Of a stretch of DNA of 34,582 bases, positions 8,858-33,713 are shown one piece after another. The position numbers and the translations under genes were made by a program. The DNA lies in the NCBI RefSeq assembly GCF_006345805.1, contig NW_021831696.1:1-34582 (forward strand), written 5' to 3'. This DNA is from Octopus sinensis. Taxonomy: Eukaryota. The notes beneath the pieces are model-generated. The model did not search any database. It was not told the origin of the DNA and was given only the letters and a program-made list of their open reading frames with translations. Numbering within the stretch: the stretch's first letter is position 1; each line of letters opens with the position of its first letter.

Positions 8858-8897
8858 ATGGACATTCTACAGTTCTGTGTGTTTGCATTGTGTTTTT
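8858..8897 (+). CDS. Exon 1: start codon and signal peptide (MDILQFCVFALCF)
   Basis: Acceptor ttttttttacag ends at 8854, ATG at 8858, donor T|gtaagt at 8898. The leftover T plus GT of the next exon gives Cys and continues the hydrophobic stretch to ...CLMKA, a plausible cleavage site. Confidence 0.8.
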
Positions 8898-10220
8898 GTA
8901 AGTTTACTTTCATTTTTGTTTTTAAATTTTTTTTCATTAACAACAAATCAAAATCAAAATCAAAATCGATCAACATCAATGGAATTTGTAGTTGTGAATC
9001 CAGTGCCGGTGGCACGTAAGAGAACCGTCCAAACGTGGCCGTTGCCAGCGCTGCCCCGACTGGCCTATGTGCCGGTGGCACGTAAAAAGCACCATCTGAT
9101 CATGGCAGTTGCCAGCCTCACCTGGCCTCCGTGCCGGTGGCATGTAAAAAGCACCATCCGATCGTGGCTGTTTGCCAGCCTCACCTGGCCTCCGTGCCGG
9201 TGGCACGTAAAAAGTACCATCTGATCGTGGCCGTTTGCCAGCCTCGTGTGGCACCTGTGCCAGTGTCACCTAATAAGCACCCACAACACTCACGAAGTGG
9301 TTGGCGTTAGGAAGGGCATCCAGCCGTAGAAACACTGCCAGATCAGACTGGGGCCTGGTGCAGCCTTCTGGCTTCCCAGACCCCAGTTGAACCGTCCAAC
9401 CCATGCTGGCATGGAAAGTGGACGCTAAATAATGATGATGATGATGATGCTGATGAACCAAATTCGATGATTGGCACCCGGGCCAGTGGAGCGCTAACAG
9501 CTCCATCCGAGCGGGACCACTGCCAGAGCAGCTGTCTGGCTTCCGTGCCGGTGGGCACGAAAAATAGCACCATTTGAGCGTGATCGTTACCAGCGTCACC
9601 TTACTGGCACATGAACAAAACATTTGAGTGAGGTCGTTGCCAGTGCCGCTGGACTGACTCCTGTGCAGGTGGCACATAAAAAAGCACCATTTCGAGCGTG
9701 GCCGTTGTCAGTACCGCCAGACTGGCCCTCGTGCCGGTGGCATGTAAAAGCACCCACTACACTCTCGGAGTGGTTGGCGTTTGGAAGGGCATCCAGCTGT
9801 AGAAACTCTGCCAGATCAGATTTATGTTTTAAAGGGAAACAAACTTTTTGTTGTTAAATGTTTAAAAAAAAAGAAAACTTTGTAACGTTAAATGTTTGAA
9901 AAGAAAGAAGAAAAAGAAAAAGAACTTTGCTGTTAAATGTGTTTCTTTAAAAGAAAGGAAAAGAAAAAAGAAAAGAAAGAAGAAAAGGGACTGTGTTACT
10001 ATTTAAAAAAAATTTTACTTGTTTCAGTGATTTGACTGTGGCCATGCTGGAGCACCGCCTTTCGTCAAGCAAATTGACCCCAGGACTTATTCTTTGTAAG
10101 CCTAGTACTTATTCTATCGGTCTCTTTTGCTGAACCGCTAAGTTATGGGGATGTAAACACACCAGCATTGGTTGTCAAGCGATGTTGGGTGGGGGGACAA
10201 ACTCAGACACACAAACATAT

Positions 10221-10255
<35 letters not shown>

Positions 10256-12495
10256 CATATATACGACGGGCTTCTTTCAGTTTCCGTCTACCAAATCCAC
10301 TCACAAGGCTTTGGTCGGCCCGAGGCTATAGTAGAAGACACTTGCCCAAGGTGCCATGCAGTGGGACTGAACCCGGAACCATGTGGTTCGTAAGCAAGTT
10401 ACTTACCACACAGCCACTCCAACACCTATAATATATATGACGGGCTTCTTTCAGTTTCCGTCTACCAAATCCACTCACAAGGCATTGGTCGGCCTGGGGC
10501 TATAGCAGAAGACACTTGCCCAAGATGCCACGCACTGGGACTGAACCTGCAACCATGTGGTTGGTTAGCAAGCTACTTACCATACAGCCACTCCTGCTTT
10601 GTTAACAAAAAAAAAATTACTTTGACTAAGCAACGTTTTGTGTGTGTTATTTTCGTTGTTGTTGTTGGCCCTACTGGCTACATCATATATATTATAGGTG
10701 TTGGAGTGGCTGTGTGGTAAGTAGCTTGCTTACCAACCACATGGTTCCGGGTTCAGTCCCACTGCGTGGCATCTTGGGCAAGTGTCTTCTACTATAGCCT
10801 GGACATGTTCTCTTGTGATTGATTCAGCCTTGGGACAAACCTTTGTGGTGCCCAATGTGTTGCGGCATCTAGACCTGCCAGAGTCATTGCAGCAGTTGTG
10901 TAGTGTTACCGGGCATTGTACTGAGCTGTGAGGACCGGTTAATCTCTGGATTGATGTTGCCGGACTAGAAGTCATGCTTCCTGTCTATGTGGTGGAGATG
11001 GAAGATCAGTGTATTTTGCGATTGGATTATTCAGCGTCGATGGCTTGTCAGCTGGACTTGTGCTCCATGAAGCTTTCGGTGCAGGGAAGACCAGTCCCCG
11101 TTAAGGTATTAAAGTGCACCACCCTTTAGAACACAGTTTAAGCTATCTTTTCGTGGAAGAAGGTTTTTGTTCCTATAACCTGTGTTAATTCTGTAACCCT
11201 TTAAAATGGAAGATAAGAAACTTCATTTTCGGCACTTGATGCTCTGGGAACCAGACAAAAATTGCTGCAGCTCGGCCGATTTATAGTAGCTTACCTTTCG
11301 ACTTATTTTAGAACATGGTTGAGTCCATAAAATAGGATTTGACTACACCTCCATTTAGAGCACAGTTTAAGCTATCTTTTCGTGAAGAAGGTTTATGTTC
11401 CTATAACCTGTGTTAATTCTGTAACCCTTTAAAATGGAAGATTAGAAAGTTCTTTTTCGGCACTTGATGCTTTGGGAACCAGACAAAAATTGCTGCAGCT
11501 CGGCCGATTTATAGTAGTTTACCTTTCGACTTATTTTAGAACATGGTTGAGTCCATAAAATAGGATTTGACTACACCTCCATTTAGAGCACAGTTTAAGC
11601 TATCTTTTCATGGAAGAAGGTTTATGTTCCTATAACCTGTGTTAATTCTGTAACCCTTTTAAAATGGAAGATAAGAAAAGTTCATTTTCAACACAATGCT
11701 TTGGGAACCAGACAAAAATTGCTGCAGCTTGGCTGTGATGTGTTACCCCACCCTCCATATTCACCAGATATTGCTCCTTCGGACTTCCACTTATTCAAGT
11801 CTCTGCAGAATAGTCTTAATGGTAAAAATTTCAATTCCTTGGATGACGTAAAAAGATACCTTTATGAATTGGTTGCCATGAAACCCCACCAATTCTGGGA
11901 AGAGGGTATTTTCAAGTTAAAGGTAAGATAGAGATGCATTGTGCAACAAAATGGTTCATATTTGGTTGATTAAAAATATAATAGCAAATATTTATTTCCT
12001 TTAAAAATCGGCACGAACTTTCCGGACAACCCAATATATATTTCTTTACTGCCCAGAAGGGGCTAAACATAGAGGGGACAAACAAGGACAGACGAAGGGA
12101 TTGAGTCAATTATATCGACCCAGTGCGAAACTGGTACTTTATTTATCGACCCCGAAAGGATGAAAGGCAAAGTTGACTTCAGCGGAATTTGAACTCAGAA
12201 TGTAACGGCAGACGAAATACCGCTAAGCATTTCGCCAGGCGCGCTAACGTGTTTGCCAGCTCGCCAGAGTAATTATATCTACAGGTGTTAATTATTATAT
12301 AATTATTGTAACATAAATAATAAACAATCCTAGGCGCAGGAGTGGCTGTGTGGTAAGTAGCTTGTTTACCAACCACATGGTTCCGGGTTCAGTCCCACTG
12401 CGTGGCATCTTGGGCAAGTGTCTTCTACTATAGCCTCGGGTCGACCAAAGCCTTGTGAGTGGATTTGGTAGACGGAAACTGAAAGAAGCCCATCG

Positions 12496-12526
<31 letters not shown>

Positions 12527-15147
12527 ATATGTTTGTGTGTCTGTGTTTGTCCCCCTAGCATTGCTTGACAACCGATGCTGGTGTGTTTATGTCCCCGTTA
12601 CTTAGCGGTTCGGCAAAAGAGACTGATAGAATAAGTACCGGGCTTACAAAAGAATAAGTTCCGGGGTCGATTATCTTGACTAAAAGGCGGTGCTCCAGCA
12701 TGGCCGCAGTCAAATGACTGAAACAAGTAAAAGAGTAAACTTAGTGGTTCGGCAAAAGAGACCGATAGAATAAGTACTGGGCTTACAAAAGAATAAGTCC
12801 CGGGGTCGAGTTGCTCGGTTAAAGGCGGTGCTCCAGCATGGCCGCAGTCAAATGACTGAAACAAGTAAAAGAGTAAACTTAGCGGTTCGGCAAAAGAGAC
12901 CGATAGAATAAGTACCGGGCTTACAAAAGAATAAGTCCCGGGGGTCGAGTTGCTCGATTAAAGGTGGTGCTCCAGCATGGCCGCAGTCAAATGACTGAAA
13001 CAAGTAAAAGAGTAAAAGAGTAATCCTGTTGATCAAATGTAAAATGTGAAACTCAAATATTTTCATTTTCGTCTTTTACAGGTTTGATGAAAGCACGACT
13101 TTACAAAATTTTCCAAACTGGTAAATGGATTAACAAATATTTTTTCTGCTTTTAACCCTTTAGTGTTCGCATTATTCTGCCAAAATTAATCCTTTTTTAT
13201 CAACATTACCAAGCAATGCTAGGGGGACAAACACAGACATACAAACACACACACACATATATATATATATATACACATACACGACAGGCTTCTTTCAGTT
13301 TCTGTCTACCAAATCCACTCACAAGGCATTGGTCGGCCCGAGGCTATAGTAGAAGACACTTGCCCAAGGTGCCACGCAGTGGGACTGAACCCGAAACCAT
13401 GTGGTTGGTAAACAAGCTACTTACCACACAGCCATCATGCACATATATATATATATATACATATATACGACGGACTTCTTTCAGTTTCCGTCTACCAAAT
13501 CCACTCACAAGGCTTTGGTCGGCCCGAGGCTATAGTAGAAGACACTTGCCCAAGGTGCCACGCAGTGGGACTGAACCCGAAACCATGTGGTTGTAAACAA
13601 GCTACTTACCACACAGCCACTCATGCATATATATATATATACATATATACGACGGGCTTCTTTCAGTTTCCGTTACCAAATCCACTTACAAGGCTTTGGT
13701 CGGCCTGAGGCTATAGCAGAAGACACTTACCCAAGGTGCCACGCAGTGGGACTGAATCCGAAACCATGTGTTTGGTAAACAGCTACTTACCACACAGCCA
13801 CTCATGCATATATATATATATACATATATATACGACGGGCTTCTTTCAGTTTCCGTCTACCAAATCCACTCACAAGGCTTGGTCGGCCCGAGGCTATAGT
13901 AGAAGACACTCGCCCAAGGTGCCACGCAGTGGGACTGACCCGAAACCATGTGGTTGGTAAACAAGCTACTTACCACACAGCCACTCCTGCATATATATAT
14001 ATATATATATACATATATACGACGGGCTTCTTTCAGTTTCCGTCTACCAAATCCACTCACAATGCTTTGGTCGGCCCGAGGCTATAGTAGAAGACACTCG
14101 CCCAAGGTGCCACGCAGTGGGACTGAACCCGAAGCCATGTGGTTGGTAAACAAGCTACTTACCACACAGCCACTCATGCATATATATATATATATACATA
14201 TATACGACGGGCTTCTTTCAGTTTCTGTCTACCAAATCCACTCTGCCGTTACGTTCAGAGTTCAAATTCAGCCGAGGTCGACTTTGCCTTTCATACTTTC
14301 GGGGTCGATAAATAAAGTACCAGTTTCACACTGGGGTCGATGTAATCGACTTAATCCGTTTGTCTGTCCTTGTTTGTCCCCTCTATGTTTAGCCACTTGT
14401 GGGTAATAAAGAAATAGGTATTTCGTCTGCCGCTACGTTCTGAGTTCAAATTCCACCGAGGTCGACTTTGCCTTTCATCCTTCGGGGTCGATAAATAAAG
14501 TACCACTTTCGCACTGGGGTCGATGTAATCGACTTAATCCGTTTGTCTGTTCTTGTTTGTCCCCTCTATGTTTAGCCACTTGTGGGTAATAAAGAAATAG
14601 GTATTTCGTCTGCCGCTACGTTCTGAGTTCAAATTCCACCGAGGTCGACTTTGCCTTTCATCCTTCGGGGTCGATAAATAAAGTACCACTTTCGCACTGG
14701 GGTCGATGTAATCGACTTAATCCGTTTGTCTGTCCTTGTTTGTCCCCTCTATGTTTAGCCCCTTGTTAGCAATAAAGAAATATATTGTAGAACACACTTG
14801 CCCAAGGTCTCACACAGTGGGACTGAACCCAGAACCATGTGGTTGGAAAGCAAACTTCTTACCTGATTTCTTTATTTCAGAAAATGTTGTCCTCAATGGA
14901 AATACTACTCTCCACATTGAGGTACCAAATATGGAGAGACCAGTCACGTGGAGGTGTGGGACTCGGAAGTATGAGTGTGACAACGTATGCTATAAAGGGG
15001 CTGAATTTAGAGTGACACAGAGTGGAAATTCTTCTTCTCTCTGGATCCGAAAGGTAACTAAGGACCTTTTGGATTGGACATTTCATGACAACAACTACAA
15101 CATTGGAAAATTTGATTTGAAGGCAAACGGTAAGGAAATGATTTATA

Positions 15148-15232
<85 letters not shown>

Positions 15233-18200
15233 TAATAACAATAATAACAATAATAACAATAACAATAATAACAATAATAATAATAATAATAATAATATTA
15301 ATAATAATAATAATAATAATATTAATAATAATAATAACAATAATAATAATAACAATAATAATAATAATAACTATAATAATAATAATAATATAATAATAAT
15401 AATACTAATAATGTGATAGCGAAAGGGGCTGATTGCTACCTAACTCAGATACCAGGAAACCCAAAGGTGGCAGAAATTCAAAAGATAGTGCTCATGGGAA
15501 CTGCTCATATCCTACGCAAAATACTTTCTATGTAATCGCAAGTTTTAAAACAAACATAATTTTCTTATGGTTTCTTAAACATTCTCTAGAACAACACTAA
15601 GTACAAAACCAAATATATGACACCCTAGGCATAACACCAATATGAACTTCCAACCTGTTGTCTCTTGAGGTCTCTGGGTGAGACTTGGAGCCAACTTGTA
15701 CAAATGTAAAGCAAAAGTCAAACATAGAATAATAATAATATATAATAATAATATAATATAATAATAATATAATAATAATAATAATAATGATGATAATAAT
15801 AATAATTAATAATGATAATAATAATTAATAATGATGATAATAATAATTAATAATAATGATAATAATAACAATAATAATAATAATAACAATAATAATAATA
15901 ACAATAATAACAATAACAATAATAATAATAATATTAATAATAATAATAATAATAATCCTTTCTACTGGAGGCACAAGGTCTCAAATTTGTGGGAGGGGAC
16001 TGGTTGATTACATTGACCCTAGTGCATAACTGGTACTGTGGAGTTGGAGTCATGGAGTTGGAGTCGGAGTCATGGAGTCGGAGTCGTAGAGTCGGAGTCG
16101 CGGGGTCGGAGTCTCGGAGTCGTGGAGTCAGAGTCGTGGAGTCGGAGTTGGTAAAATAAACCACCGTCGCTTATTTAAATAGAGGAGTCAGAATCAATGT
16201 TTTTTTTGTTTCGACTCCACAGCCCTGCATAATACAGGTGAAACATTTTGGCCAGATATGGCCAGTTTAAATGCTACATGGTTGATGTTTGAACAGAGAA
16301 CCACATGCTCAATGACTTCTAAAACTACCACTGTATGTAATGCATAATTGTATCTACAGGTCTTAATTATTATTTAATTATTATAACATAAATAATAAAC
16401 AATCCTGTTGATCAAATATTAAATCTGAAAATCAACGTTTTTTTTTTTCATCTTTTACAGGTCCGACGAAAGTGGAAGCTTATGAAATTATCCAAAATGG
16501 TAAATGAATTAAGAAGCCTTTTTCTCCTTTTAAACTGAATATTACTGGCTCAGTGGTTAGAGCGTCGAGCTTACGATCGTGAGGTTGTGAGCTCGAATCC
16601 CGGACCGGGCTGCGTGTTGTGTTCTTGAGCAAGACACTTTATCTCACGTTGCTCCAGTTCACTCAGCTGTAGAAATGAGTTGCGACGTCACAGGTGCCAA
16701 GCTGTATCGGCCCTTGCCTTTCCCTTGGATAACATCGGTGATGTGGAGAGGGGAGGCCGGTATGTATGGGCGACTGCCGGTCTTCCATAAAAAACAACCT
16801 TGCCCAGACTTGTGCCTCAGAGGGTAACTCACTAGGTGCAAACCCATGGTCAGTGTCTGACCGAAGGGGGTCACCATATCACTGTGTTATATAAGGGTGG
16901 ATGGGAGTAACTAGAAAGGGAGAGATGATATAATCAGACATACACCCATGTATGATGATGTCATGCCTCAGTAAACATAAATCTCATTAAATTAAATCTA
17001 ATTAGGTTAAGTGTAATAAGGTGTCTAGTGGAGGCGCAATGGCCCAGTGGTTAGGGCAGCGGACTCGCGGTCATAAGATCGCGGTTTCCATTCCCAGACC
17101 GGGCGTTGTGCGTGTTTATTGAGCGAAAACACCTAAAAGCTCCACGAGGCTCCGGCAAGGGATGGTGGTGATCCCTGCTGTACTCTTTCACCACAACTTT
17201 CTCTCACTCTTACTTCCTGTTTCTGTTGTACCTGTATTTCAAGGGGCCGGCCTTGTCACTCTCTGTGTCACGCTGAATATCCCGGAGAACTACGTTAAGG
17301 GTACACGTGTCTGTGGAGTGCTCAGCCACTTGCACGTTAATTTCACGAGCAGGCTGTTCTGTTGATTCGGATCAACCGGAACCCTCATCGTCGTAACCGA
17401 CGGAATGCTTCCATCCAACAAATAAGGTGTCTAATTTCTTTTGATAATCTCTATTGCACATTTTCCCTTTTAATTTCCATGGCAAAAATATTAATCCTTC
17501 AGCATTCAGATTATTGTCAAATGGAATCCTTATTTATCCACATTGTTTTGGATTAATCATGGATTATCTCATAGCTTTGAGATTTCAATGATGTGATTGT
17601 TTATTGTTAGAATGACATTGCAGAGTAGGTGTGAGAGGCCAGATATGGCCAGTTTAATCCTTTAGCATTCAGATTATCTGTCAACTGTAATCCTTATTTA
17701 TTCACATTGTTTTGGATTAATCATGGATTATCTTGTAGTTTTGAGATTCAATGATGTGATTGTTTATTTTTAGAATGACATTGCAGAGTAGGTGTGAGAG
17801 GCCAGTTTAATCCTTTAGCATTCAGATTACTCTATCAAATGTCATCCTTATTTATCCACATTGTTTTGGATTAATCATGGATTATATCATAGCTTGAGAT
17901 TTCAATGATGTGATTGTTTATTTTTAGAATGACATTGCAGAGTAGGGTGAGAGGCCAGTTTAATCTTTAGCATTCAGATTATCTCCCAAATGTAATCCTT
18001 ATTTATTCACATTGTTTTTTGAATTAATCAGAAATTCAGAAATTATCTCATAGCTTTGTGATGTGACTGTTTCTGTTGAGAATGGCATGGTAGGTACGGT
18101 GGGAGAGGTCAGATGCGGGTATTTTGAACCTAAAGCAAATAGAATATTTGGGCATTGATTTACCAGTTTAAATGCTAAAGGGTTAAAATTGGGTGCAAGA

Positions 18201-19182
18201 TGAAAGCATGGCTTTGGTTAGGAACCATTCCCTAGGCCAACCAAAGCACGCGGAATTCTGTTCTTGATTCGACGGTCATTCGGAATGCTCACAGCAGCCA
18301 TATTCCGACCGCTCTATGTCACGCTGGTGAGACCCATATTGGAGTACGGGATTCAAGCCTCTTCTCCTTATCTCCTCAAAGACATACAGCATCTCGAAAG
18401 AGTCCAGAAGCTGGCTACCGCATGGTCATAGTCTCAAAAATTGTCCTATACGAAGAAAGGTGAGGACGCTTGACCTTTATTCTCTAGAAAAACGCCGCCG
18501 CCGTGGTGATCTCATTCTCGCCCACAACATCACAAGCGGAAAGTGTAACTCTCAAAAGAGCTGTTCTTCACTCCTGCTCCAGAGCATCGGCTGCGGGGTC
18601 ATTCCGAAAACCTCTACCAGCGACGATTTCATCTCAACCGAAGGAGAGGAGCTTTCTCCGTCCGGGTTGCGGATCCGTGGAACAAGCTGCCAGACGAGAT
18701 GGTGAAGATGCCGACGACCGCTTTGTTCAAAGCCTCCCTTGACCTCAAGTGTCCTGAACTCTTTATATGAACACCACCCTGTACTTAACTCCATGTCCCC
18801 CTACATGGCCTTGCTATTGCTTTTGAGCCAATTAACTAACAAAACTAATAACTAAAGCTTTGTGAATGGATTAGGTAGACAAAAGCTGAAATGAGCCTGA
18901 TATGTGTGTGTACATATATATAATAATAATAATTATTATTATTATAATGTTTTATTACATATATACTCTTTACTCTTTACTCTTTTACTTGTTTCAGTCA
19001 TTTGACTGCAGCCATGCTGGAGCACCGCCTTTAGTCGAGCAAATCGACCCCCGGGACTTATTCTTTGTAAGCCCAGTACTTATTCTATCGGTATCTTTTG
19101 CCGAACCGCTAAGTGACGGGGACGTTAAACACACCAGCATCGGTTGTCAAGCAATGCTAGGGGGACAAACACAGACACACAA

Positions 19183-22276: not shown

Positions 22277-22644
22277 CATTAATTATTATGAATTACTGTG
22301 CCTGACGTCAAATCTGCGCCCATTAAACCTGGATCCATGTGGTAGAAAAGTAAACATTTTACCTGGTTTCTTTATTTCAGATATTGGTGATCTCAGTGTA
22401 AGCGCTACTCTACAGGTTGAAATACCAAACATGAAAAGACCGACCGTTTGGAAATACAACAATTATAAATACGAATGTGATCGGACATGCGCTAACAGCG
22501 CCGAATACAGAGTGACGCAGAAGGGAGATATATCGACTCTTTGGATCCGAAACGTAACAAAGGAACGATTGACTTGGAAATTTGAAGAAGACAACCTCAA
22601 CTATGAAAAATTTGATTTGAAGATACACAGTAAGGAAATGATTT

Positions 22645-22683
<39 letters not shown>

Positions 22684-22686
22684 GTG

Positions 22687-22722
<36 letters not shown>

Positions 22723-22736
22723 TTAATAATAATGAT

Positions 22737-22768
<32 letters not shown>

Positions 22769-22797
22769 GATAATGATAATAATTAATAATGATAATG

Positions 22798-22829
<32 letters not shown>

Positions 22830-22950
22830 AATAATTAATAATGATAATAATTAATAATAATAATAATAATGATAATGATGATAATTGATGATAATAATAA
22901 TAATAATAATAATTCATCATAATGATAATAATAATTCATAATAATTAATG

Positions 22951-23008
<58 letters not shown>

Positions 23009-23104
23009 TAATAAAATAATAATAATAATAATAATAATATAATAATGATAATAATAATTAATAATAATGATAATAATAATAATTAATAATTAATAATAAT
23101 GATA

Positions 23105-23153
<49 letters not shown>

Positions 23154-23201
23154 TGATAATAATAATAATAATAATAATAATTATGATAATAATAATTAAT
23201 G

Positions 23202-23248
<47 letters not shown>

Positions 23249-25768
23249 AATGATAAACCTTTCTGTTATAGGCACAAGGCCTGAAATTGAAGGGAGGGGG
23301 CATAGTCGATTATATCAACCACAGTACTCAACTGGTACTTAATTAATTGACCCCAGAAGGATGAACGGTAAAGTTGACCTCAGCGAAATATGGAACTCAG
23401 AATGTAGCGACAGGCAAAATACCGCTAAGCATTTCGTCCAGCATGCTAACAATCCTGATGGTGGTGGTGGTGGTGGCAGTGGAGGTGGCAGCAGCGGTGG
23501 TGGTTTTAGTGATGGTTGTGGCAGTGGAGGTGATGGTTTTAGTGGTGGTGGTGGTGGTGGTGGTTTTGGTAGTGGTGGTGGTGGTGGTTTTAGTGGTGGT
23601 GGTGGTGGTGGTGGTTTTAGAGGTGGTGATGGTTTTAGTGGTGGTGGTGGTGGTGGTGGTTTTAGTGGTGGTAATGGTTTTAGTGGTGGTGGTGGTTTTA
23701 GTGGTGGTGATGGCTTTAGCGGTGGTGGTTTTGGTGGTGGTGGTGGTGGTTTTAGTGGTGGTGATGGTTTTAGTGGTGGTGGTTTTGGTGGTGGTGGTGG
23801 TGGTGGTTTTAGTGGTGGTGGTTTTGGTGGTGGTGGTGATGGCTTTAGTGGTGGTGGTTTTGGTGGTGGTGGTGGTTTTGATGGTGGTGATGGTTTTAGT
23901 GGTGGTGGTGGTGGTGGTGGCTTTAGTGGTGGTGATGGCTTTAGTGGTGGTGGTTTTGGTGGTGGTGATGGTTTTAGTGGTGGTGGTTTTGGTGGTGGTG
24001 ATGGTTTTAGTGGTGGTGGTTTTGGTGGTGGTGATGGTTTTAGTGGTGGTGGTTTTGGTGGTGGTGATGGTTTTAGTGGTGGTAGTTTTGGTGGTGGTGG
24101 TGGTGTTGGTTTTGGTAGTAGTGGTGGTGTTGATGGTTGTGGCAGTGGAGGTGGCGGCGGTGTTGGTAGTTGTGGTGGTGGTTTTGGTGGTGGTGGTGAT
24201 GGTGGTGGTGGTTCAATGCCTTCACTCTAACTGCCACTATATACATATAATTATGCAATCATTGTAACATAAACTGCAATCAATCCTGATGATCAAATGT
24301 AAAATCTGAAAATGAAAAATTTTTGTTTTCTTCTTTTTCAGGTTCAACAAGAACAGAAATATACAAAATTACTCAAAATGGTAAATAGATTGACAACCTT
24401 TTTTCCCTCTTTTATACTAGACCCTATCTTTTCAATTCTGCCTTCTATTTCATTCTCTTAAATCATAGTTTTTAACCATTTTTTAAAACCTTTCTCTGAT
24501 CAGCTCAAGTTAAGTTAAGTTAAGTTAAGTTAATTATTTGGCTCAAAAAGCAAAAAGCAAGACCATGTAGGGGGACATGGAGTTAAGTACAGGGAGGGTG
24601 TTCATGCAAAGAGTTCAGGCCATTTCTGGTCAAGGGAGACTTTGAACCGAGCAGTCGTCGGCATCTTCACTATCTCGTCCGGCAGCTTATTCCACGGATC
24701 CGCAACCCGGACGGAGAAAGCCCCTCTATAGAGAATAATGGTCAAGCGTCTTACCACACAGCCACCCCTATGCCTATATTTATATTTAGAAGGTCATTTG
24801 TTATGGTCATTTACCATCAGTCTTGCATTTATAAAGCGCTTAGCTGTACAGGTTAGTTAAGTTAAGTTGAGTTAATTTTTTGGCTCAAAAAGCAAAAAGC
24901 AAGGCCATGTAGAGGGACATGGAGTTATGTACAGGGAGGGTGTTCATGCAAAGAGTTCAGGCCATTTGTGGTCAAGAGAGACTTTGAACCGAGCGGTCGT
25001 CGGCATCTTCACTATCTCGTCCGGCAGCTTATTCCACGGATCCGCAACCCGGACAGAGAAAGCCCCTCTCTTTCGATTGAGATGAAATCGTTGTAGATAG
25101 AGCTTTATATATATATATATATATTCAATTCAATTCAATTCAATTTTTATTGGCTCAAAAAGCAAAAGCAAGGCCATGTAGGGGGACATGGAGTTATGTA
25201 CAGGAAGAGTGTTCATGCAAAGAGTTCAGGCCATTTCTGGTCCAGAGAGACCTTGAACTGAGCGGTTGTCGGCATCTTCACTATCTCGTCCAGCAGCTTA
25301 TTCCACGGATCCGCAATCCAGACGGAGAAAGCCCCTCTCCTTCGATTGAGATGAAATCGTCACACATAGAGCTTTTCAGAATGACCCCGCAGCCTACGCT
25401 CTGGAACAGGAGTGAAGAACAGCTCTTTTGAGAGGTTACACTTTCTGCTTATGATGTTTCCTTTGGAGATCATAAAAAATAACCATCACCATTTAATGGC
25501 CTCGATGCCAGCGCCGCCTTGACTGGCTTTTGTGCCGGTGGCATGTAAAAAGCACCAATCTGATCATGGCCATTGCCAGCCTCACCTTGCACCTGTGCCG
25601 GTGGCACGTAAAAAGCACCCACTACACTCTCGGAGTGGTTGGCATTAGGAAGGGCATCCAGCTGTAGAAACACTGCCTGATCAGACTGGAGTGTGGTGCA
25701 GCCTCCTGGCTTCCCAGATCCCCGTCGACCCGTCCAACCCATGCTAGCATGGAGAACGGACGTTAAAC

Positions 25769-26343: not shown

Positions 26344-27331
26344 GGCATAGGAGTGGCTGTGTGGTAAGTAGCTTGCTAACCAACCTCATGGTTCCGGGTT
26401 CAGTCCCACTGTGTGGCATCTTGGGCAAGTGTCTTCTGCTATAGCCTCGGGCCGACCAAAGCCTTGTAAGTGGATTTGGTAGACGGAAACTGAAAGAAGC
26501 CTGTCGTATATATGTGTATATATATATATATATGTATGTGTGTGTTTGTGTGTCTGTGTTTGTCCCCCTAGCATTGCTTGACAACCGATGCTGGTGTGTT
26601 TATGTCCCCGTTACTTAGCGGTTTGGCAAAGGAGACCGATAGAATAAGTACTGGGCTTACAAAAGAATAAGTCCCGGGGTTGAGTTGCTCGATTAAAGGC
26701 GGTGCTCCAGCATGGCCGCAGTCAAAATGACTGAAACAAGTAAAAGAGTACAAAGAGTATTAGGACCAGAAGAGTGTCCAGTTATGCACAAAGAAAACTC
26801 TGCTCCCAAGCAAGGAAAAGTAGGTGTTAAAATGGCAATGATGATGAAATCTTTCATATGGAAAACCAATCAATAATATTGATTTGTCTTTTTATTTCAG
26901 GACCAGTTGCATTAGGGGGCAGTGTTACACTTCATATTGAAGTAGCCGGGATGAAAAGAATTGTTGGCTGGAAAAACGACTATGGAAGATATGAATGTGA
27001 TATGACTTGTTATAATCGTAGTAACCATGAAGTTACACAAAATGGTAACTCATCGAAGCTTTTGATCCGAAATGTCACCAAACAAGATTTGACTTGGTAT
27101 TTTTGTGACTTGAATCTCTGCTCTGGAAATTATTCCTTAAAGATAAAAGGTAAGTGAATTACTTTTGCTAATAATAATAATAATAATAACGATAATGATA
27201 ATAATAATAATAATGATAATGATGATAATAATGATAATGATAATGATGATAATAATAATAATAATGATAATAATAATAATATAATAATAATAATAATGAT
27301 GATAATAATAATGATAATGATAATAATAATG

Positions 27332-27379
<48 letters not shown>

Positions 27380-27413
27380 TAATAATAATATAATAATGAT
27401 GATGATGATGATG

Positions 27414-27445
<32 letters not shown>

Positions 27446-27464
27446 GATAATGATAATAATAATA

Positions 27465-27555
<91 letters not shown>

Positions 27556-29237
27556 TAATAATAATAATAATAATAATGATGATAATGATGATAATAATAA
27601 TGATGATGATAATAATGATAATCATCATCATCATCATCGTCGTTTAACGTCCGTTCTCCATGCTAGCATGGGTTGGACGGTTCGACCGGGGTTCTGGGAA
27701 GCCAGAAGGCTGCACCAGGCTCCAGTCTAATTTGGCAATGTTTCTACAGCTGGATGCCCTTCCTAACGCCAACCACTCCGTGAGTGTAGTGGGTGCTTTT
27801 TACGTGCCACCTGCACAGGTGCCAGGCGGGGCTGGCAACGGCCACGGTCAGATTGGTGTATTTTATGTCCCACTGGCACGGAAGCCAGTCGAGGCGGTGC
27901 TGGCATCGGCCACGAGTCGGATAGTGCTTTTTACGTACCACCAGACCAGGGATCCTGGCTGGTTCAATTCGATTTCGATTTCGCTTGCCCCAACATGTCT
28001 TCACAAGCAAAGGGGGTTGGCAAGGGTGCCTGTCGTACGGTCGCATTGGAGTATTTTACGTGCCACGGCCACGAGTCGGATAGTGCTTTACGTACCACCA
28101 GACCAGGGATCCTGGCTGGTTCAATTCGATTTCGATTTCGCTTGCCCCAAATGTCTTCACAAGCAAAGGGGGTTGGCATGGGTGCCTGTCGTACGGTCGC
28201 ATTGGAGTATTTTACGTGCCACGGCCCCGAGTCGGATAGTGCTTTTTACGTACCACCAGGCCAGGGATCCTGGCTGGTTCAATTCGGTTTCGATTTCGCT
28301 TGCCCCAACATGTCTTCGCAAGCATGGGGGGTTGGGATGGGTGTCTGTCGTCGGATGAGGTTCTATATCGACTTCGCTTGCCTCAACCGGTCTTTGTGTC
28401 CAAGGGAGGAAAGGCATTCATAAGTGGGCTGGGCTCACTTGTCCTGCCTGGTCTTCTCACGTACAGAATATTTCCAAAGGTCTCGGTCTCTGGTCATTTC
28501 CTCAGTGAGGCCTAAAGTTCGAAGGTCGTGCTTCACCACCTCGTCCCAGGTTTTCCTGGGTCTACCTCTTCCACGGGTTCCCTCAACTGCTAGGGATTGG
28601 CACTTTCTCACACACCTATCTTCATCCATTCTCGCCACATGACCATACCAGCGCAATCGTCTCTCTTGCACACCACAACTGATGCTTCTTAGGTACAACA
28701 TTTCTCTCAAGGTGCTAACGCTCTGTCGAGTATGTACACTGACATTACACATCCATCGGAGCATACTGGCTTCATTCCTCACGAGCTTACGCATGTCCTC
28801 AGCAGTCACAGCCCATGTTTCGCTACCATGTAGCATGGCTGTTCGTACACACGCATCATACAGTCTGCCTTTTACTCTGAGCGAGAGGCCTAGTCACCAG
28901 CAGCAGAGGTAAGAGCTCCCTAAACTTTGCCCAGGCTATTCTATTCTAGCAGTTACACTTTCAGCGCACCACCCCCATACTGACTTGGTCACCTAGATAA
29001 CGGAAGCTATCAACTACTTCTAGTTTTTCCCCCTGGAAAGTGACGGAAGTTGTTTTCTGCAGATTTTCGGAGGTTAATGCTCCCGAGCATCTGCCACATA
29101 CAAAAACTATCTTCCCAGTTAGCCTACTTTGACTTGGCTGCCCTCTTATGTGTCCATAGCTTACACTGGGTACATCTTATAGAGTTTCTACCTACACCTT
29201 TTACAGATCGAGCAGGGCCATAGAAAAGGTGTAGGTA

Positions 29238-30006: not shown

Positions 30007-30055
<49 letters not shown>

Positions 30056-30194
30056 TATTTTTATTATTATTTTATTATATAATTATTATCATTATTATAT
30101 TATTATTATCATCATTAATTATTATGAATTATATTATTATTATTATTATATTATCATGAATATTAGAATTATTATTATTATTATATTATTATTA

Positions 30195-30227
<33 letters not shown>

Positions 30228-33200
30228 TATTATCATTAATTATTATGAATTATTATTATTATTATTAGTTTATTATTATTATTATCATTAAATTATGAAT
30301 TATTATTATATATTATTATATTATTATTATTATTATTATTATTATCATTAATTATTATGAATTATTATTATTATTATTGTTATTATCATTATTATTATTA
30401 TTATTATTATCATTAATTATTATGAATTATTATTATTATTATTATATTATTATTATTATTATTATTATTATTATCATTAATTATTTGAATTACTGTGCCT
30501 GACGTCAAATCTGCGCCCATTAAACCTTTTGTTTAATTGTTCTGTTGGACAACCAACATAAATCAAGCATGTTTCATACATTCTGCTGCATACACCAAAT
30601 GGGAATCTCTCCATGTCCCACTTATATTATATTCGTAACACTAGCTAAATTAAGTTAAGTTAATTTTTGGGCTCAAAAAGCAAAAAGCAAGGTCATGTAG
30701 GGGGACATGGAGTTATGTACAGGGAGGGTGTTCATGCAAAGAGTTCAGGCCATTTCTGGTCAAGAGAGACTTTGAACCGAGCGGTCATCAGCATCTTCAC
30801 TATCTCGTCCGGCAGCTTATGCCATGGATCCGCAACCCGGACGGAGAAAGCCCCTCTCCTTTGATTGAGATGAAATCGTTGCAGATAGAGCTTTATATAA
30901 ATATATATTCTATTCAATTCAATTTTTATTGGCTCAATAAGCAAAAGCAAGGCCATGTAAGGGGACATGGAGTTATGTACAGGGAGGGTGTTCATGCAAA
31001 GAGTTCAGACCATTTCTGGTCAAGAGAGACTTTGAACTGAGCGGTCGTCGGCATCTTCACTATCTCGTCCGGCAGCTTATTCCACGGATCCGCAACCCGG
31101 ACGGAGAAAGCCCCTCTCCTTCGATTGAGATGAAATCGTCGTAGATAGAGCTTTTCGGAGTGACCCCGCAGCCGACGATCTGAATGATAACTAAGTTATT
31201 TTACTAATTCTTTGTTATATTTAAAGTAATTGAAAGAAACAACAGAGCATCTCAACAGAAATATGGTAACGAAAGGGTTAAATTATATAATAGAGAAACA
31301 ATTCTTAACCCTTTTGATACCAACCCGGCTGAAACCACCTTTGGCTCTGTGGTACAAATGTCTTGTTTTCATAAGTTCTGAATTAAAATCTTCCACCAAA
31401 CCTTAGTCACAATTTATGTTCCTAACACTAGCTTAATGATAACCAAGTTATTTTTCTAAATTCTTTGTTATATTTAAAGTAATTGAAAGAAACACAGAGC
31501 ATCTCAACAGAAATATGGCAACGAAAGGGTTAAAATATATAATAGAGAAACAATTCTTAACCCTTTCATTACCAACCCGGCTGAAACCACCTTTGGCTCT
31601 GTGGTACAAATGTCTTGTTTTCATAAGTTCTGAATTAAAATCTTCCACCAAACCTTAGTCACATTTTATGTTCCTAAAACTAGCTTAATGGTAACTAAGT
31701 TATTTTACTAAATTCTTTGTTATATTTATAATTAATTGAAAGAAACACAGAGCATCTCAACAGAAATATGGTAACAAAAGGGTTAAAATATATAATAGAG
31801 AAACAATTCTTAACCCTTTCATTACCAACCCGGCTGAAACCACCTCTGGCTCTGAGTACAAATGTCTTGTTTTCATAAGTTCTGAATTAAAATCTTCCAC
31901 CAAACCTTAGTCACAATTTATGTTCCTAACACTAGCTTAATGATAACTAAGTTATTTTACTAAATTCTTTGTTATATTTAAAGTAATTGAAAGAAACACA
32001 GAGCATCTCAACAGAAATATGGTAACAAAAGGGTTAAATTATATAATAGAGAAACAATTCTTAACCCTTTTGATACCAACCCGGCTGAAACCACCTCTGG
32101 CTCTGAGTACAAATGTCTTGTTTTCATAAGTTCTGAATTAAAATCTTCCACCAAACCTTAGTCACAATTTATGTTCCTAACACTAGCTGAATGATAACCA
32201 AGTTATTTTACTAAATTCTTTGTTATATTTAAAGTAATTGAAAGAAACACAGAGCGTCTCAAAATAAATACAGTAACGAAAGGGTTAATAAAGAAATCTG
32301 TCTTTTATTAAAAAAACGAAAGGTACATGTTTCATTGTTTATCTTTTGCAGATCAAACAACTAATGGACCAAGACCCCGCATACCAGTCTATGCTGTTGT
32401 TATCCTTTCCCTACTTGGATTTGTAGTCATCCTTCTCATAATCTGCTTCTTCATATACAGATACAACCCTTGCAACATGAGGGAAACTTTTGTCACCTAC
32501 TACACATCTTGTATAGAACACCGGAGACATAGGAATGTTATATATAGACCACCAAAGACATAAGAATGTTATATATATATATATAGTGGAGGCGCAATGG
32601 CCCAGTGGTTAGGGCAGCGGACTCGCGGTCGTAGGATCGCGGTTTCGATTCCCAGACCGGGCGTTGTGAGTGTTTATTGAGCGAAAACACCTAAAAGCTC
32701 CACGAGGCTCCGGCAGGGGATGGTGGTGATCCCTGCTGTACTCTTTCACCACAAACTTTCTCTCACTCTTACTTCCTGTTTCTGTTGTACCTGTATTTCA
32801 AGGGGCCAGCCTTGTCACTCTCTGTGTCACGCTGAATATCCCCGAGAACTACGTTAAGGGTACACGTGTCTGTGGAGTGCTCAGCCACTTGCAGGTTAAT
32901 TCCACGAGCAAGCTGTTCCGTTGATCGTATCAGCTGGGACCCTCATCATCGTAACCGATGGATTACAGAGAAAAAAATGAGCGATAACATCTAAAAGCTC
33001 CACGAGGCTCCGGCAGGGGATGGTGGTGATCCCTGCTGTACTCTTTCACCACAAACTTCTCTCACTCTTACTTCCTGTTTCTGTTGTACCTGTATTTCAA
33101 GGGGCCAGCCTTGTCACTCTCTGTGTCACGCTGAATATCCCCGAGAACTACGTTAAGGTACACGTGTCTGTGGAGTGCTCAGCCACTTGCAGGTTAATTC

Positions 33201-33713
33201 CACGAGCAAGCTGTTCCGTTGATCGTATCAGCTGGGACCCTCATCATCGTAACCGATGGATTACAGAGAAAAAATTGAGCGATAACATCTAAAAGCTCCA
33301 CGAGGCTCCGGCAGGGGATGGTGGTGATCCCTGCTGTACTCTTTCACCACAAACTTTCTCTCACTCTTACTTCCTGTTTCTGTTGTACCTGTATTTCAAG
33401 GGGCCGGCCTTGTCACTCTCTGTGTCACGCTGAATATCCCCGAGAACTACGTTAAGGGTACACGTGTCTGTGGAGTGCTCAGCCACTGACATGTTAATTT
33501 CACAAGCAGGCTGTTCCGTTGATTCGGATCAACCGGAACCCTCGTCGTCGTAACCGACAGTGTGCTTCCAATACAATCCATATATAGAACACCGGAGACA
33601 TAAAAATGTTATATTTTGTGATTTCTTCAGTGGCAGCTTGTGTAGAGGCACTGAGGAACTGCAGCACCACCCCGGCCATCTCCACTCGATATTATCAAAA
33701 ACATTCAATATAA
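8858..33713 (+). CDS. Spliced gene (9 coding exons, 381 aa): type I membrane protein with signal peptide, three tandem Ig-like domains, TM helix and short cytoplasmic tail
   Basis: join(8858-8897,13082-13120,14881-15129,16461-16499,22381-22629,24342-24380,26901-27149,32352-32510,33631-33713) = 1146 nt, open from ATG to TAA. All introns are GT-AG and phase 1. Protein begins MDILQFCVFALCFCLMKARLYKIFQTENVVLNG. Seven N-x-S/T sequons lie in the predicted ectodomain. The last junction is the least certain. Confidence 0.85.
9000..9832 (+). mobile_element. Two adjacent RTE-type 3' UTR fragments
   Basis: Repeated gtgccggtggcacgtaaaaagcacc units. The first copy ends in (GAT)n at ~9450 and the second is truncated at ~9830. 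Confidence 0.7.
10013..10597 (-). mobile_element. SINE family A with duplicated head
   Basis: One tail and two heads (10262-10420 and 10438-10597). Confidence 0.85.
10812..11118 (+). pseudogene. Gypsy-like LTR retrotransposon aspartic protease fragment
   Basis: Translates LVIDSALGQTFVVPNVL...*GPVNLWIDVAGLEVMLPVYVVEMEDQCILRLDY...QLDLCSMKLSVQG. This fits retropepsin hallmarks: hydrophobic-D-S-(G>A) active site and IL(G>R)LD motif. One internal stop. Confidence 0.7.
11119..12037 (+). mobile_element. Internally deleted mariner transposon with triplicated ~229-bp 5' segment
   Basis: MEDKKLHFRHLML N-terminus is fused to QKLLQLG.DVLPHPPYSPDIAPSDFHLFKSLQNSL (mariner YSPDLAPSD motif). The right end ...cggacaacccaata|TA is present; a left TIR was not found. 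Confidence 0.88.
12045..12267 (-). mobile_element. SINE family B
   Basis: Near-identical to 1-222. Confidence 0.8.
12332..13021 (+). mobile_element. SINE family A with one head and three tandem tails; AATCCT target-site duplication
   Basis: AATCCT at 12326-12331 and 13022-13027. The paralogous empty site is at 16401-16406. Confidence 0.92.
13082..13120 (+). CDS. 39-nt micro-exon M1 ((C)LMKARLYKIFQT)
   Basis: cgtcttttacag|...ACTG|gtaaat. Its length, phase and flanking intron sequence are homologous to 16461-16499 and 24342-24380. Confidence 0.85.
13205..14242 (-). mobile_element. Tandem array of 5-6 SINE family A heads
   Basis: ~185-bp unit (cgggcttctttcagtttcc...ccacacagccactc) separated by (AT)n. 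Confidence 0.88.
14243..14782 (+). mobile_element. Tandem trimer of SINE family B body
   Basis: gccg(t/c)tacgttc(a/t)gag recurs at ~14246, ~14430 and ~14611. Confidence 0.85.
14881..15129 (+). CDS. 249-nt exon, Ig-like domain 1 (ENVVLNGNTTLHIEVP...KFDLKAN)
   Basis: tttctttatttcag| acceptor and G|gtaagg donor. Open frame with VTW, YECDNVC and SLWIRKVT motifs. 41/83 residues are identical to domain 2 by my count. Confidence 0.92.
15145..15957. repeat. (AAT)n tracts following Ig-like exon 1
   Basis: Two tracts (15145-15415 and 15727-15957). The intervening sequence is not assigned. Confidence 0.95.
16036..16228. mobile_element. (GGAGTC)n-containing MITE-like element
   Basis: The left end ctgtggagttggagtc and the right end cgactccacagccctg are inverted, with internal GGAGTC repeats. 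Confidence 0.55.
16461..16499 (+). CDS. 39-nt micro-exon M2 ((G)PTKVEAYEIIQN)
   Basis: catcttttacag|...AATG|gtaaat; paralogue of M1 and M3. Confidence 0.85.
16543..16875 (+). mobile_element. tRNA-derived SINE, family D
   Basis: A box TGGCTCAGTGG and B box GCTCGAATCCC, followed by ttgagcaagacacttt and a non-tRNA body. Confidence 0.75.
17028..17415 (+). mobile_element. tRNA-derived SINE, family C (possibly tRNA-Arg related)
   Basis: A box TGGCCCAGTGG, TCG at the anticodon-like position and a degenerate B box. Homologous copies at 20217 and 32586. Confidence 0.8.
17491..18186. mobile_element. piggyBac-like MITE with four tandem ~155-bp 5' units
   Basis: Units start ttaatcctttagcattcag at ~17491, 17654, 17807 and 17960. 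The element ends aatgctaaaggg|TTAA. Confidence 0.65.
18190..18840 (+). mobile_element. CR1-clade LINE 3' fragment (ORF2 C-terminus and 3' UTR)
   Basis: KARGILFLIRRSF...LYVTLVRPILEYGIQASSPYLLKDIQHLERVQKLAT...LDLYSLEKRRRRGDLI is a typical CR1 ORF2 C-terminus, with frameshifts and a (TAAC)-type tail. Confidence 0.88.
18965..19383 (-). mobile_element. SINE family A, full length
   Basis: Direct similarity to the other copies. Confidence 0.88.
19486..19960. mobile_element. Probable non-autonomous Tc1/mariner-superfamily (pogo/Tc2-like) remnant
   Basis: Starts TA|CCGTAAATCTTGAGTATAATCCG and has the complementary gcgtattatacacaagg motif near the end. No complete right TIR. Confidence 0.35.
20217..21365 (+). 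mobile_element. SINE family C with internal tandem amplifications; 12-bp TSD
   Basis: ATAGTAAAAGAC at 20205-20216 and 21366-21377. It is inserted in an older minus-strand family A SINE. Confidence 0.92.
21418..22330 (+). repeat. Duplicated block A: ~130-nt unassigned segment, SINE B 3' part, (TTA)n and unique end
   Basis: Collinear with 29665-30527. The SINE and TTA part is the reverse complement of 22645-23405. Confidence 0.88.
22381..22629 (+). CDS. 249-nt exon, Ig-like domain 2 (DIGDLSVSATLQVEIP...KFDLKIH)
   Basis: tttctttatttcag| acceptor and A|gtaagg donor. Gap-free alignment to domains 1 and 3. Confidence 0.92.
22645..23457 (-). repeat. Block B: (AAT)n tract plus minus-strand SINE B remnant
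   Basis: Shares diagnostic variants (tatatcaaccacagtactc, aattaattgaccccagaagg, gatgaacgg) with blocks A and C that the 1-222 copy lacks. Confidence 0.88.
23458..24212. repeat. (GGT)n-based minisatellite (GGTGGTGATGGTTTTAGT-like units)
   Basis: Visible directly; it produces the Gly-rich and Val-rich ORFs. Confidence 0.9.
24342..24380 (+). CDS. 39-nt micro-exon M3 ((S)STRTEIYKITQN)
   Basis: ttctttttcag|...AATG|gtaaat; paralogue of M1 and M2. Confidence 0.85.
24505..25467 (-). mobile_element. Three truncated CR1 3' fragments
   Basis: Reverse complements of the 3' part of 18190-18840, at ~24505-24735, 24853-25110 and 25126-25467. Confidence 0.82.
25490..25826 (+). mobile_element. RTE-type 3' fragment with long (GAT)n tail
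   Basis: Shares the 3' end catgctagcatggagaacggacgttaaacgatgatg. Confidence 0.78.
26147..26760 (+). mobile_element. SINE family A with two heads
   Basis: Heads at ~26147 and ~26344, with a single tail. Confidence 0.86.
26901..27149 (+). CDS. 249-nt exon, Ig-like domain 3 (GPVALGGSVTLHIEVA...NYSLKIK)
   Basis: tctttttatttcag| acceptor and G|gtaagt donor. GGSVTL, VGW, LLIRNVTKQD and WYFC resemble the B, C, E and F strands of a V-type Ig fold. Confidence 0.92.
27170..27620. repeat. (AAT/GAT)n tract following Ig-like exon 3
   Basis: Visible directly. It continues at 29240-29350 on the far side of the RTE insertion. Confidence 0.95.
27620..29239 (-). mobile_element. 5'-truncated RTE-clade LINE
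   Basis: Minus-strand LEVVDSFRYLG...LYDACVRTAMLHGSETW...RRLRWYGHVARM...RGRGRPRKTW is an RTE ORF C-terminus. The 3' UTR has a ~159-bp triplication and ends in (GAT)n. Confidence 0.92.
29665..30527 (+). repeat. Duplicated block C (second copy of block A)
   Basis: Runs atttctcctcgtgc ... ttactgtgcctgacgtcaaatctgcgcccattaaacct. It is not followed by an Ig-like exon. Confidence 0.88.
30650..31183 (-). mobile_element. Two tandem CR1 3' fragments
   Basis: ggctcaa...gcaaggccatgtagggggacatgg occurs at ~30669 and ~30930. Confidence 0.82.
31184..32288. mobile_element. Tandem array (~4.4 copies, ~252-bp period) of a piggyBac-like MITE plus spacer
   Basis: TTAA|CCCTTT...AAAGGG|TTAA units start at 31305, 31557, 31810 and 32061, separated by atataatagagaaacaattc. 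Confidence 0.8.
32352..32510 (+). CDS. Transmembrane exon (DQTTNGPRPR-IPVYAVVILSLLGFVVILLIICFFIY-RYNPCNMRETFVTYYTS)
   Basis: atcttttgcag| acceptor, in frame at phase 1. A 26-residue hydrophobic segment is followed by Arg. The 3' end is uncertain: weak donor T|gtatag at 32511, otherwise read-through to TAA at 32561-32563. Confidence 0.85.
32586..33570 (+). mobile_element. SINE family C with three ~300-bp internal repeats
   Basis: One tRNA-like head, then aaagctccacgaggctccggcagggg at ~32693, 32993 and 33293. Confidence 0.88.
33631..33713 (+). CDS. Probable terminal exon, cytoplasmic tail ((L)AACVEALRNCSTTPAISTRYYQKHSI*)
   Basis: ttttgtgatttcttcag| acceptor at 33630. The phase-1 frame is open to TAA at 33711-33713. 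It is a short unique-sequence island between repeats. Confidence 0.55.

Follow-up and report, generated by a model that had tools for sequence, protein, structure and literature searches.

Does a repeat-laden, unplaced contig of Octopus sinensis carry a spliced gene for a cell-surface receptor, where does this gene end, and to which family does it belong? The stretch analysed here, called the window in the following, is the whole of contig NW_021831696.1 (34,582 bp; C8167 in our numbering of the 13,516 contigs of the 2.72-Gb assembly). It is AT-rich and crowded with copies of short interspersed nuclear elements (SINEs), microsatellites and tandem arrays. An initial annotation, made from the sequence letters, had proposed a hidden gene of nine exons for an immunoglobulin (Ig)-like receptor with three domains. 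Here, we find that the window very probably carries a real and intact protein-coding gene, listed in RefSeq as LOC115228031. The gene encodes a predicted single-pass surface protein of the Ig superfamily, and it belongs to an undescribed, octopod-restricted and expanded family with a very divergent Ig-like domain. It is not hidden, as RefSeq holds two isoforms of it, X1 with 371 amino acids (aa) and X2 with 328 aa. The gene model is thus already public, and the practical outcome is the correction of the proposed product to 371 aa.

Gene model and exon structure

The exon chain was rebuilt de novo from the sequence. It comprises eight coding exons of 40, 39, 249, 39, 249, 39, 249 and 212 nucleotides (nt), in total 1116 nt across 23.7 kb (Table 1). 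All internal boundaries fall in phase 1; joined together, the exons form a single open frame of 371 aa. The three 249-nt exons are found within long open frames that hold repeats, and each is preceded by TTTCAG and followed by GTAAG. Between known exons, we scanned for stop-free segments of the form AG-39 nt-GT in the correct phase. Each intervening stretch contains 6 to 13 such candidates, of which a single one combines a long pyrimidine tract with the donor GTAAAT; these are exons 2, 4 and 6. The three mini-exons have 25-26 of 39 nt in common in pairwise comparison. In case of exon 2, the splice context is TTTTACAG at the acceptor and GTAAAT at the donor. Exons 1 and 2 occur with the same sequence on contig C11942.

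The product of this chain is letter-for-letter XP_029654562.1, the "uncharacterized protein LOC115228031 isoform X1" of Octopus sinensis, with which the N-terminus encoded by exon 1 also agrees. Isoform X2 starts at Met44; the two are the only annotated isoforms and differ N-terminally. RefSeq describes the same gene as the one found in the window, with nothing different, and assigns no function to it. A search by gene and protein identifier found no paper on LOC115228031 among the literature searched. A protein of 371 aa from O. vulgaris has the same C-terminus and differs from the window product at 18 residues. Its record is named with an O. sinensis accession, so that the annotation may have been transferred and may be non-independent evidence.

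The coordinates of exons 1 to 7 are exactly those of the initial annotation, which also placed the start of exon 8 correctly. Its argument that the repeated lengths of 39 and 249 nt go beyond chance holds as well. When 26 paralogous domain exons were aligned with 40-nt flanks, AG and GT were located in the same columns in all 26; 25 of these exons have 249 nt and one has 246 nt. The unit of a 39-nt and a 249-nt exon, both of phase 1-1, by which members of the family are recognised, occurs three times in the window.

Upstream of the start codon, an acceptor-like tract (T9 ACAG, 8841-8857) places an AG at 8853-8854, three bases 5' of the ATG, and a non-coding 5' exon may be located upstream of 8855. 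Isoform X1 of the gene on C11942 has 28 extra N-terminal residues, joined exactly before the isoleucine encoded by ATC at 8855-8857; these 28 residues have no match anywhere in the window. A word-index search with the C-terminal 166 aa for transcript-derived fragments across the last junction found none. The Logan-derived family fragment P0047 was considered as a cDNA and rejected, since it runs through intron sequence and is thus genomic.

Table 1. Coordinates of the coding exons and of features at the 3' end of the gene; positions refer to the window.
Feature	Position	Strand	Description
Coding exon 1	8858..8897	+	40 nt; ATG at 8858; encodes the initial 13 residues of the putative signal peptide (MDILQFCVFALCF); donor GTAAGT after T
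Coding exon 2	13082..13120	+	39 nt, phase 1-1; completes the putative signal peptide and adds strand A of Ig domain 1 (CLMKARLYKIFQT)
Coding exon 3	14881..15129	+	249 nt, phase 1-1; strands B-G of Ig domain 1
Coding exon 4	16461..16499	+	39 nt; linker and strand A of Ig domain 2 (GPTKVEAYEIIQN); same sequence in C11942
Coding exon 5	22381..22629	+	249 nt; strands B-G of Ig domain 2
Coding exon 6	24342..24380	+	39 nt; linker and strand A of Ig domain 3 (SSTRTEIYKITQN); same sequence in C11942
Coding exon 7	26901..27149	+	249 nt; strands B-G of Ig domain 3
Coding exon 8 (last)	32352..32563	+	212 nt including TAA 32561-32563; stalk, transmembrane helix, 33-residue cytoplasmic tail, stop
Overlapping copies of a ~30-nt segment	32512..32543 and 32540..32574	+	recur at 33583-33614 (93.8% and 88.6% identity to 33583-33614)
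tRNA-like SINE and derived 299-nt tandem array	32584..33560	+	non-coding, directly after the stop, between direct repeats
Rejected "exon 9"	33631..33713	+	entirely within dispersed repeat 33628-33757, in the 3' flank

The 3' end of the gene

The initial annotation let exon 8 end at 32510 and spliced it to a ninth exon at 33631-33713, which results in a product of 381 aa from 1146 nt over 24.9 kb. Such a join still leaves the frame open, and an AG is present at 33629-33630 after a short pyrimidine run. However, the donor at 32510 is the weak GTATAG, compared to GTAAG or GTAAA in all seven other donors, and the proposed exon is a chance match within a dispersed repeat. Genome-wide, 679 candidate places of this repeat were found; the 40 that were scored are the window itself, a copy on C11942 (97%) and 38 dispersed copies on many contigs (81-89%). 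Because exon 9 is repeat sequence, the C-terminus of the 381-aa product is an artefact. Exon 9 is moreover located beyond a SINE array that is bounded by direct repeats. The paralogue LOC115227428 on contig C2722 has transmembrane segment, tail and stop within one exon; its TAA aligns with the in-frame TAA of the window at 32561-32563, and the two stops are homologous. Both the RefSeq and the O. vulgaris protein finish with ...RPPKT. We thus regard a ninth exon as scarcely credible and describe the gene with eight.

The end of exon 8 has an unusual make-up. Two overlapping copies of a segment of approximately 30 nt encode the last 17 residues of the protein. The copies are offset by 28 nt, which changes the frame; the TAG of the first copy is therefore read through, and the TAA of the second copy terminates the protein. 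The paralogue LOC115227428 has only one copy of this segment. Directly after the stop, at position ~32584, follows a SINE that is 96.6-98.3% identical to the window copies at 17026 and 20217, and then a tandem array (32676-33557, period 299, 2.9 copies). After the downstream copy of the ~30-nt segment, TTTTGTGATTTCTT (33611-33624) resumes the sequence that the paralogue on C2722 shows past its stop. The SINE and its array look like an insertion with a duplicated target.

Protein architecture and Ig fold

The product is a predicted type I membrane glycoprotein of 371 residues with a signal peptide, three Ig domains of ~96 residues, a stalk, one transmembrane helix and a tail of 33 residues. In this respect, our results support the spliced gene that was initially proposed, including its three Ig-like repeats, transmembrane helix and short tail. 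By hydropathy alone, the N-terminus is hydrophobic at residues 3-24 (Kyte-Doolittle 1.6-1.7), and paralogues show small residues at positions -3 and -1 (LTKA|Q and LTSA|K). A second hydrophobic segment spans residues 309-344, with a hydropathy peak of 3.36 at 318-336; it is the only strong segment, and AlphaFold2 predicts a transmembrane helix at 314-338. All seven N-x-S/T sequons (residues 34-295) are N-terminal of this helix, the arrangement of a type I protein with a single transmembrane segment on its C-terminal side.

In each Ig unit, linker and strand A come from a 39-nt exon, and strands B to G from a 249-nt exon. Pfam I-set matches domain 3 only (residues 214-290, E 9.8e-10, 38.8 bits compared to a cut-off of 23.7). 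With an alignment of 12 sequences, AlphaFold2 models the whole protein with a mean predicted local distance difference test (pLDDT) of 65.9 as three beta sandwiches, an N-terminal helix and the transmembrane helix; domain 1 is modelled as a beta sandwich as well, and domain 3 reaches pLDDT 81-92 in most parts. Domain 2 alone, with an alignment of 43 sequences, is predicted with eight strands (pLDDT 82.8, predicted template modelling score 0.76). The best matches of Foldseek in the PDB are titin Ig tandems, IgLON proteins and NCAM Ig1-3 for the whole model (E 2e-10 to 1e-5). For the domain 2 model, they are I-set domains of obscurin, MyBP-C, titin and twitchin, with template modelling (TM) scores of 0.54-0.66 at probability 1.00. 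Predicted structures and Foldseek matches agree on a two-sheet beta sandwich, and these models support three divergent I-set-like Ig domains.

The tryptophan of strand C, a hallmark of the Ig fold, is invariant across 43 domain units and located in the predicted strand C. The strand-B cysteine is missing from all three domains, which leaves no canonical B-F disulfide, a bond that is frequent in Ig domains without being required. Strand F reads TWTF, TWKF and TWYFC, with a cysteine in domain 3 only. At the end of strand C', a C-x3-C motif is found, whose C46 is invariant and whose C50 is present in at least 90% of the 43 units; the pair may form a disulfide. A regular expression search of the tail (35 residues past the hydrophobic core) found no match to an immunoreceptor tyrosine-based inhibitory motif (ITIM), immunoreceptor tyrosine-based switch motif (ITSM), YxxL/I, YxxPhi, NPxY, dileucine or PDZ-type motif. 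In the Pfam scan, the product has no lectin, fibrinogen, TIR, death or Fn3 domain.

Closest copies in the genome

Two annotated genes, LOC115231260 on C11942 and LOC115227428 on C2722, have the exon plan and the three domains of the window gene. The product of LOC115231260 differs at 6 of 371 residues. The window could therefore represent the other haplotype of LOC115231260, or a redundant copy of it in the assembly, and no separate locus, a reading that is compatible with an intact gene. Exon spacing is colinear between C8167 and C11942, the five exons 1-4 and 6 have the same sequence in both, and the contigs agree over 739 nt around exon 4 except for two 1-nt indels. Both copies have the 28-nt duplication and the SINE past the stop, and the window is a complete unplaced contig of 34.6 kb. 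Against this, NCBI assigns separate gene identifiers to the two copies, and their tandem-repeat copy numbers are unequal. On balance, we lean towards a single locus that is present twice, on C8167 and C11942, either as two haplotypes or through redundant assembly.

The differences between both contigs are grouped in small patches. In exon 5, four substitutions compared to C11942 occur in the first 26 nt (22381-22406) and cause three amino-acid changes (IGDLSVSA versus NGALSVSS); the other 223 nt are identical. A conversion patch is one possible explanation, a local hot spot another.

LOC115227428 is 80% identical to the window gene in a global alignment and 84% identical over the locally aligned 90%, and its exon 3 differs at 4 nt. 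Similarity to this paralogue is mosaic: 80 of 83 residues are identical in domain 1, 69 of 83 in domain 2, 81 of 83 in domain 3, and 20 of 70 in the transmembrane segment and tail. Unlike the window gene, LOC115227428 has neither the 28-nt duplication nor a SINE directly past its stop. Domain 2 of the O. vulgaris protein is mixed, with a window-like first half and a second half that carries substitutions of LOC115227428. These patterns suggest an exchange of sequence between family copies.

Family size, distribution and evolution

A six-frame search of the genome with domain 2 gives 85 matches, which are nearly all stop-free and include 78 at E < 1e-3. Contig C27 holds 37 of the 85 domain-exon matches, 20 of them inside 16.11-16.94 Mb. 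Family genes hold one to five domains, and some gene models omit the 39-nt exon; domain number can vary and the mini-exon can be skipped because every cassette is of phase 1-1. We suppose that the family grew through tandem duplication of the 39+249-nt unit, and that phase 1-1 exons would allow units to be gained, lost or skipped with the frame kept.

Among the paralogous domain exons, column identity is 0.83, 0.85 and 0.74 at codon positions 1, 2 and 3. The pairwise ratio of non-synonymous to synonymous substitution rates (dN/dS) has a median of 0.30 (288 pairs) and amounts to 0.5-0.75 among the closest paralogues. These comparisons of sequences indicate net purifying selection on the family, that is, constraint on a coding function. 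The initial label "fast-evolving" finds partial support in these values.

The family is characterised by the motif P-N-M-K/R-R-P-x-x-W ... Y-E-C-D-x-T-C ... S-T-L-W-I-R-x-V-T ... W-x-F-x-D, which is present in domains 1 and 2 of the window protein and recognisable in domain 3. Family members vary most in three places, namely linker plus strand A, the C-C' turn and strand G. They vary least in strand E, in strand C' (YKYEC) and in the B-C loop (IPNMKRP), so that this loop does not correspond to a hypervariable "CDR1" (complementarity-determining region 1).

A family profile built from twelve proteins was searched against 1.84 billion cluster representatives. It retrieves 45 proteins at E <= 1e-3, whose named members come from Octopus sinensis, O. 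vulgaris, O. bimaculoides and Argonauta hians; exceptions are one protein of Haliotis rufescens and giant Ig-repeat proteins such as obscurin. No decapodiform protein is among the matches, where it is uncertain how well decapodiform proteomes are represented. As far as these searches reach, members appear only in the octopod genera Octopus and Argonauta, and the Haliotis protein is possibly a distant relative. By identifiers and topic, the family is not described in the literature searched. This is in good agreement with the initial proposal of a lineage-restricted gene that bears no functional name.

Two observations concern the cluster on C27. At 16.296-16.358 Mb (minus strand) and 16.417-16.483 Mb (plus strand), the RefSeq isoforms of LOC115225115 and LOC115225116 differ in which of the local domain exons they include. 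For example, isoform X4 consists of the exons at 16358k, 16340k, 16334k and 16296k, and isoform X16 of a 16148k-type exon and those at 16340k, 16334k and 16328k. This suggests cassette-type alternative splicing in the family genes of C27; the isoforms are computational models, and we take the observation as a lead. At 16.11-16.17 Mb and 16.585-16.624 Mb, family exon matches occur in mirrored pairs with equal scores on opposite strands. The positions of each pair (16117258/16617002, 16132940/16601734, 16148575/16585622 and 16110156/16624112) sum to ~32.734 Mb, which reflects either an inverted duplication of ~0.5 Mb or an assembly artefact.

Comparison with known systems

The I-set domains (PF07679) of titin (I10, I27, I81), obscurin (Ig1), MyBP-C and twitchin (Ig26) have the fold predicted here, with a root-mean-square deviation of 2.2-3.6 A over ~77-100 columns. 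Their sequence identity to the window domains is 12-26%, and the window domains have C-x3-C instead of the B-F disulfide. Furthermore, the reference proteins are sarcomeric, whereas the window protein is predicted to be extracellular and glycosylated.

Three tandem Ig domains at the cell surface are also found in the IgLON proteins OPCML, NEGR1 and IgLON5, in NCAM Ig1-3 and in nectin-like 4, which are among the top structural matches of the whole model (E 1e-7 to 4e-5). TM scores of the whole model to IgLON/NCAM-type proteins are low (0.17-0.25) because the domain orientations differ. Searched against all PDB chains, the family profile reaches a best E of 0.18 (CD79b) and shows no sequence relationship to IgLON or NCAM. 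IgLONs are anchored by glycosylphosphatidylinositol, whereas the window protein has a transmembrane helix; with neither such an anchor nor an Fn3 domain in Pfam, it is not placed in the IgLON/NCAM group.

Arrays of variable ectodomain exons are known from Dscam, chelicerate sDscam and clustered protocadherins. The Octopus family likewise has tandem Ig-domain exons and differing annotated isoforms, and sDscam Ig1-2 ranks 33 among the structural matches of the domain 2 model. The mutually exclusive splicing, homophilic binding and neuronal expression of the Dscam type have no counterpart in our evidence. Among molluscs, LOC124119024 of Haliotis rufescens (562 aa, five repeats of ~96 aa and a transmembrane segment) has the same layout and keeps the spacing W ... 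C-x3-C ... STL-I--V ... W-I-D. Hmmsearch gives E 8e-16 for the whole protein, and hhalign of one domain gives 41% probability, E 2.8e-4 and 25% identity; from these values, homology beyond the general Ig fold is not established. Molluscan fibrinogen-related proteins (FREPs) carry a C-terminal fibrinogen-related domain, and the window protein ends differently, with a transmembrane segment and a short tail. It is also distinct from receptors with an ITIM or an immunoreceptor tyrosine-based activation motif (ITAM), which have a tyrosine motif in the tail that finds no match here.

Alternative interpretations

Several facts weigh against an intact gene of the Ig superfamily at its own locus. The entry in RefSeq is a computational prediction by Gnomon, and the window may represent LOC115231260 on its second haplotype. 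Pfam Ig models have no match on domains 1 and 2 and reach E <= 0.01 in just 2 of 43 non-redundant family domain units. These two domains are without the canonical B-F cysteine pair, and domain 1 has three cysteines, an odd count. The tail is the part least preserved among paralogues, as the comparison with LOC115227428 demonstrates, and the last 17 residues derive from the 28-nt tandem duplication beside the SINE insertion. The remodelled tail and the odd cysteine count would also fit a recent duplicate on its way to a pseudogene, either silent or in decay. So would the changes in exon 5 compared to C11942, which are about three non-synonymous to one synonymous; the remaining three differences at the protein level fall in exons 7 and 8. 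Yet, all eight exons are open and every splice site is intact, the reshaped tail is retained in both C11942 and the O. vulgaris protein, and coding constraint holds throughout the family. We therefore judge decay to be very improbable, and an intact gene remains the preferred interpretation.

A different question, raised by the initial annotation, is whether the gene belongs to a diversified repertoire of receptors for immunity or allorecognition. The family is large and clustered, similarity among close copies is mosaic, and isoforms of family genes differ in their domain exons. In addition, the four substitutions within 26 nt of exon 5 contrast with an otherwise identical haplotype. Net purifying selection speaks against such a repertoire. 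Likewise, the tail lacks ITIM, ITSM, YxxL/I and YxxPhi matches and hence any ITIM or ITAM, lectin, fibrinogen, TIR and death domains are missing, and the genes are not mentioned in the literature searched. Weighing these points, we consider an immune role unlikely and prefer the more general one of a surface protein for binding.

Repeats and other features in the window

A SINE piece of 81 nt (14783-14863), which belongs to the commonest SINE of the window, ends 17 nt 5' of the acceptor of exon 3; elsewhere in the window, no fewer than 17 further copies match it at 80-89%. Exon 5 is preceded by a diverged copy (22326-22380), and such copies also precede most paralogous domain exons genome-wide, except for the domain-3-type exon (26901) and the copy on contig C30. 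As it occurs before most domain exons, the piece is part of the duplication unit, and it could serve to date the family expansion. Long (AAT/ATA)n microsatellites (15145-15412, 22645-23256 and 27169-27622) start ~15-20 nt past the donor of each 249-nt exon, and a conserved flank, GTAAGGAAATGATTTATAATAAT, near the donors of the 249-nt exons is common to most family members.

Intron 5 contains a G-rich, (TGG)n-like array of 750 nt (23459-24212). The 2-kb windows that cover it have a GC skew of +0.55 and +0.48, and the array gives rise to long but spurious reading frames on either strand (poly-Gly/Phe and poly-Pro/Lys). At the 3' end of the window, a 106-nt tandem array (33884-34582; 6.5 copies, 93% matches) reaches the end of the contig and may be the reason why the assembly stopped there.

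The open reading frame (ORF) at 6383-6700 (+) has a weak likeness to a helicase C-terminus (Pfam Herpes_Helicase, E 2.4e-4, under the cut-off) and, to judge from this match, may be a Helitron/Pif1-type remnant. Three ORF fragments at 11599-11931 (+), 18222-18742 (+) and 28435-28893 (-) presumably resemble the C-terminus of mariner-type transposases and reverse-transcriptase tails of long interspersed nuclear elements; Pfam gives no significant match for these three. ARAGORN and Rfam found nothing over the window.

Proposed function and significance

From its architecture, the window protein would be a cell-surface binding protein for adhesion or recognition, whose glycosylated Ig ectodomain might contact a ligand or a like molecule. 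Since the tail is short, unconserved and free of known motifs, any signal would have to pass via an associated partner. Surface location, binding role, ligand and tissue are all matters that we can only infer at present.

More speculatively, the gene may be one unit of an octopod-specific system of cell-surface diversity. Such a system would draw on the dozens of phase-1 Ig cassettes on C27, and it would vary them by duplication, by exchange of segments as in the mosaic domain 2 and tail, and by alternative use of domain exons. We hold this to be quite unlikely on present evidence; if it were true, the system would give cells or individuals distinct surface codes, as Dscam, sDscam and clustered protocadherins do elsewhere.

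From a biological point of view, the locus leads to a large, clustered and octopod-restricted family of membrane proteins, whose Ig-like domain is so divergent that most copies escape Pfam. Expanded protocadherins are known in cephalopods. The family described here would be a second expanded surface family of recognition type, with freely shuffled phase-1 cassettes, and as such it would be a reasonable candidate for a role in neural wiring, in contact sensing by suckers or skin, or in innate immunity.

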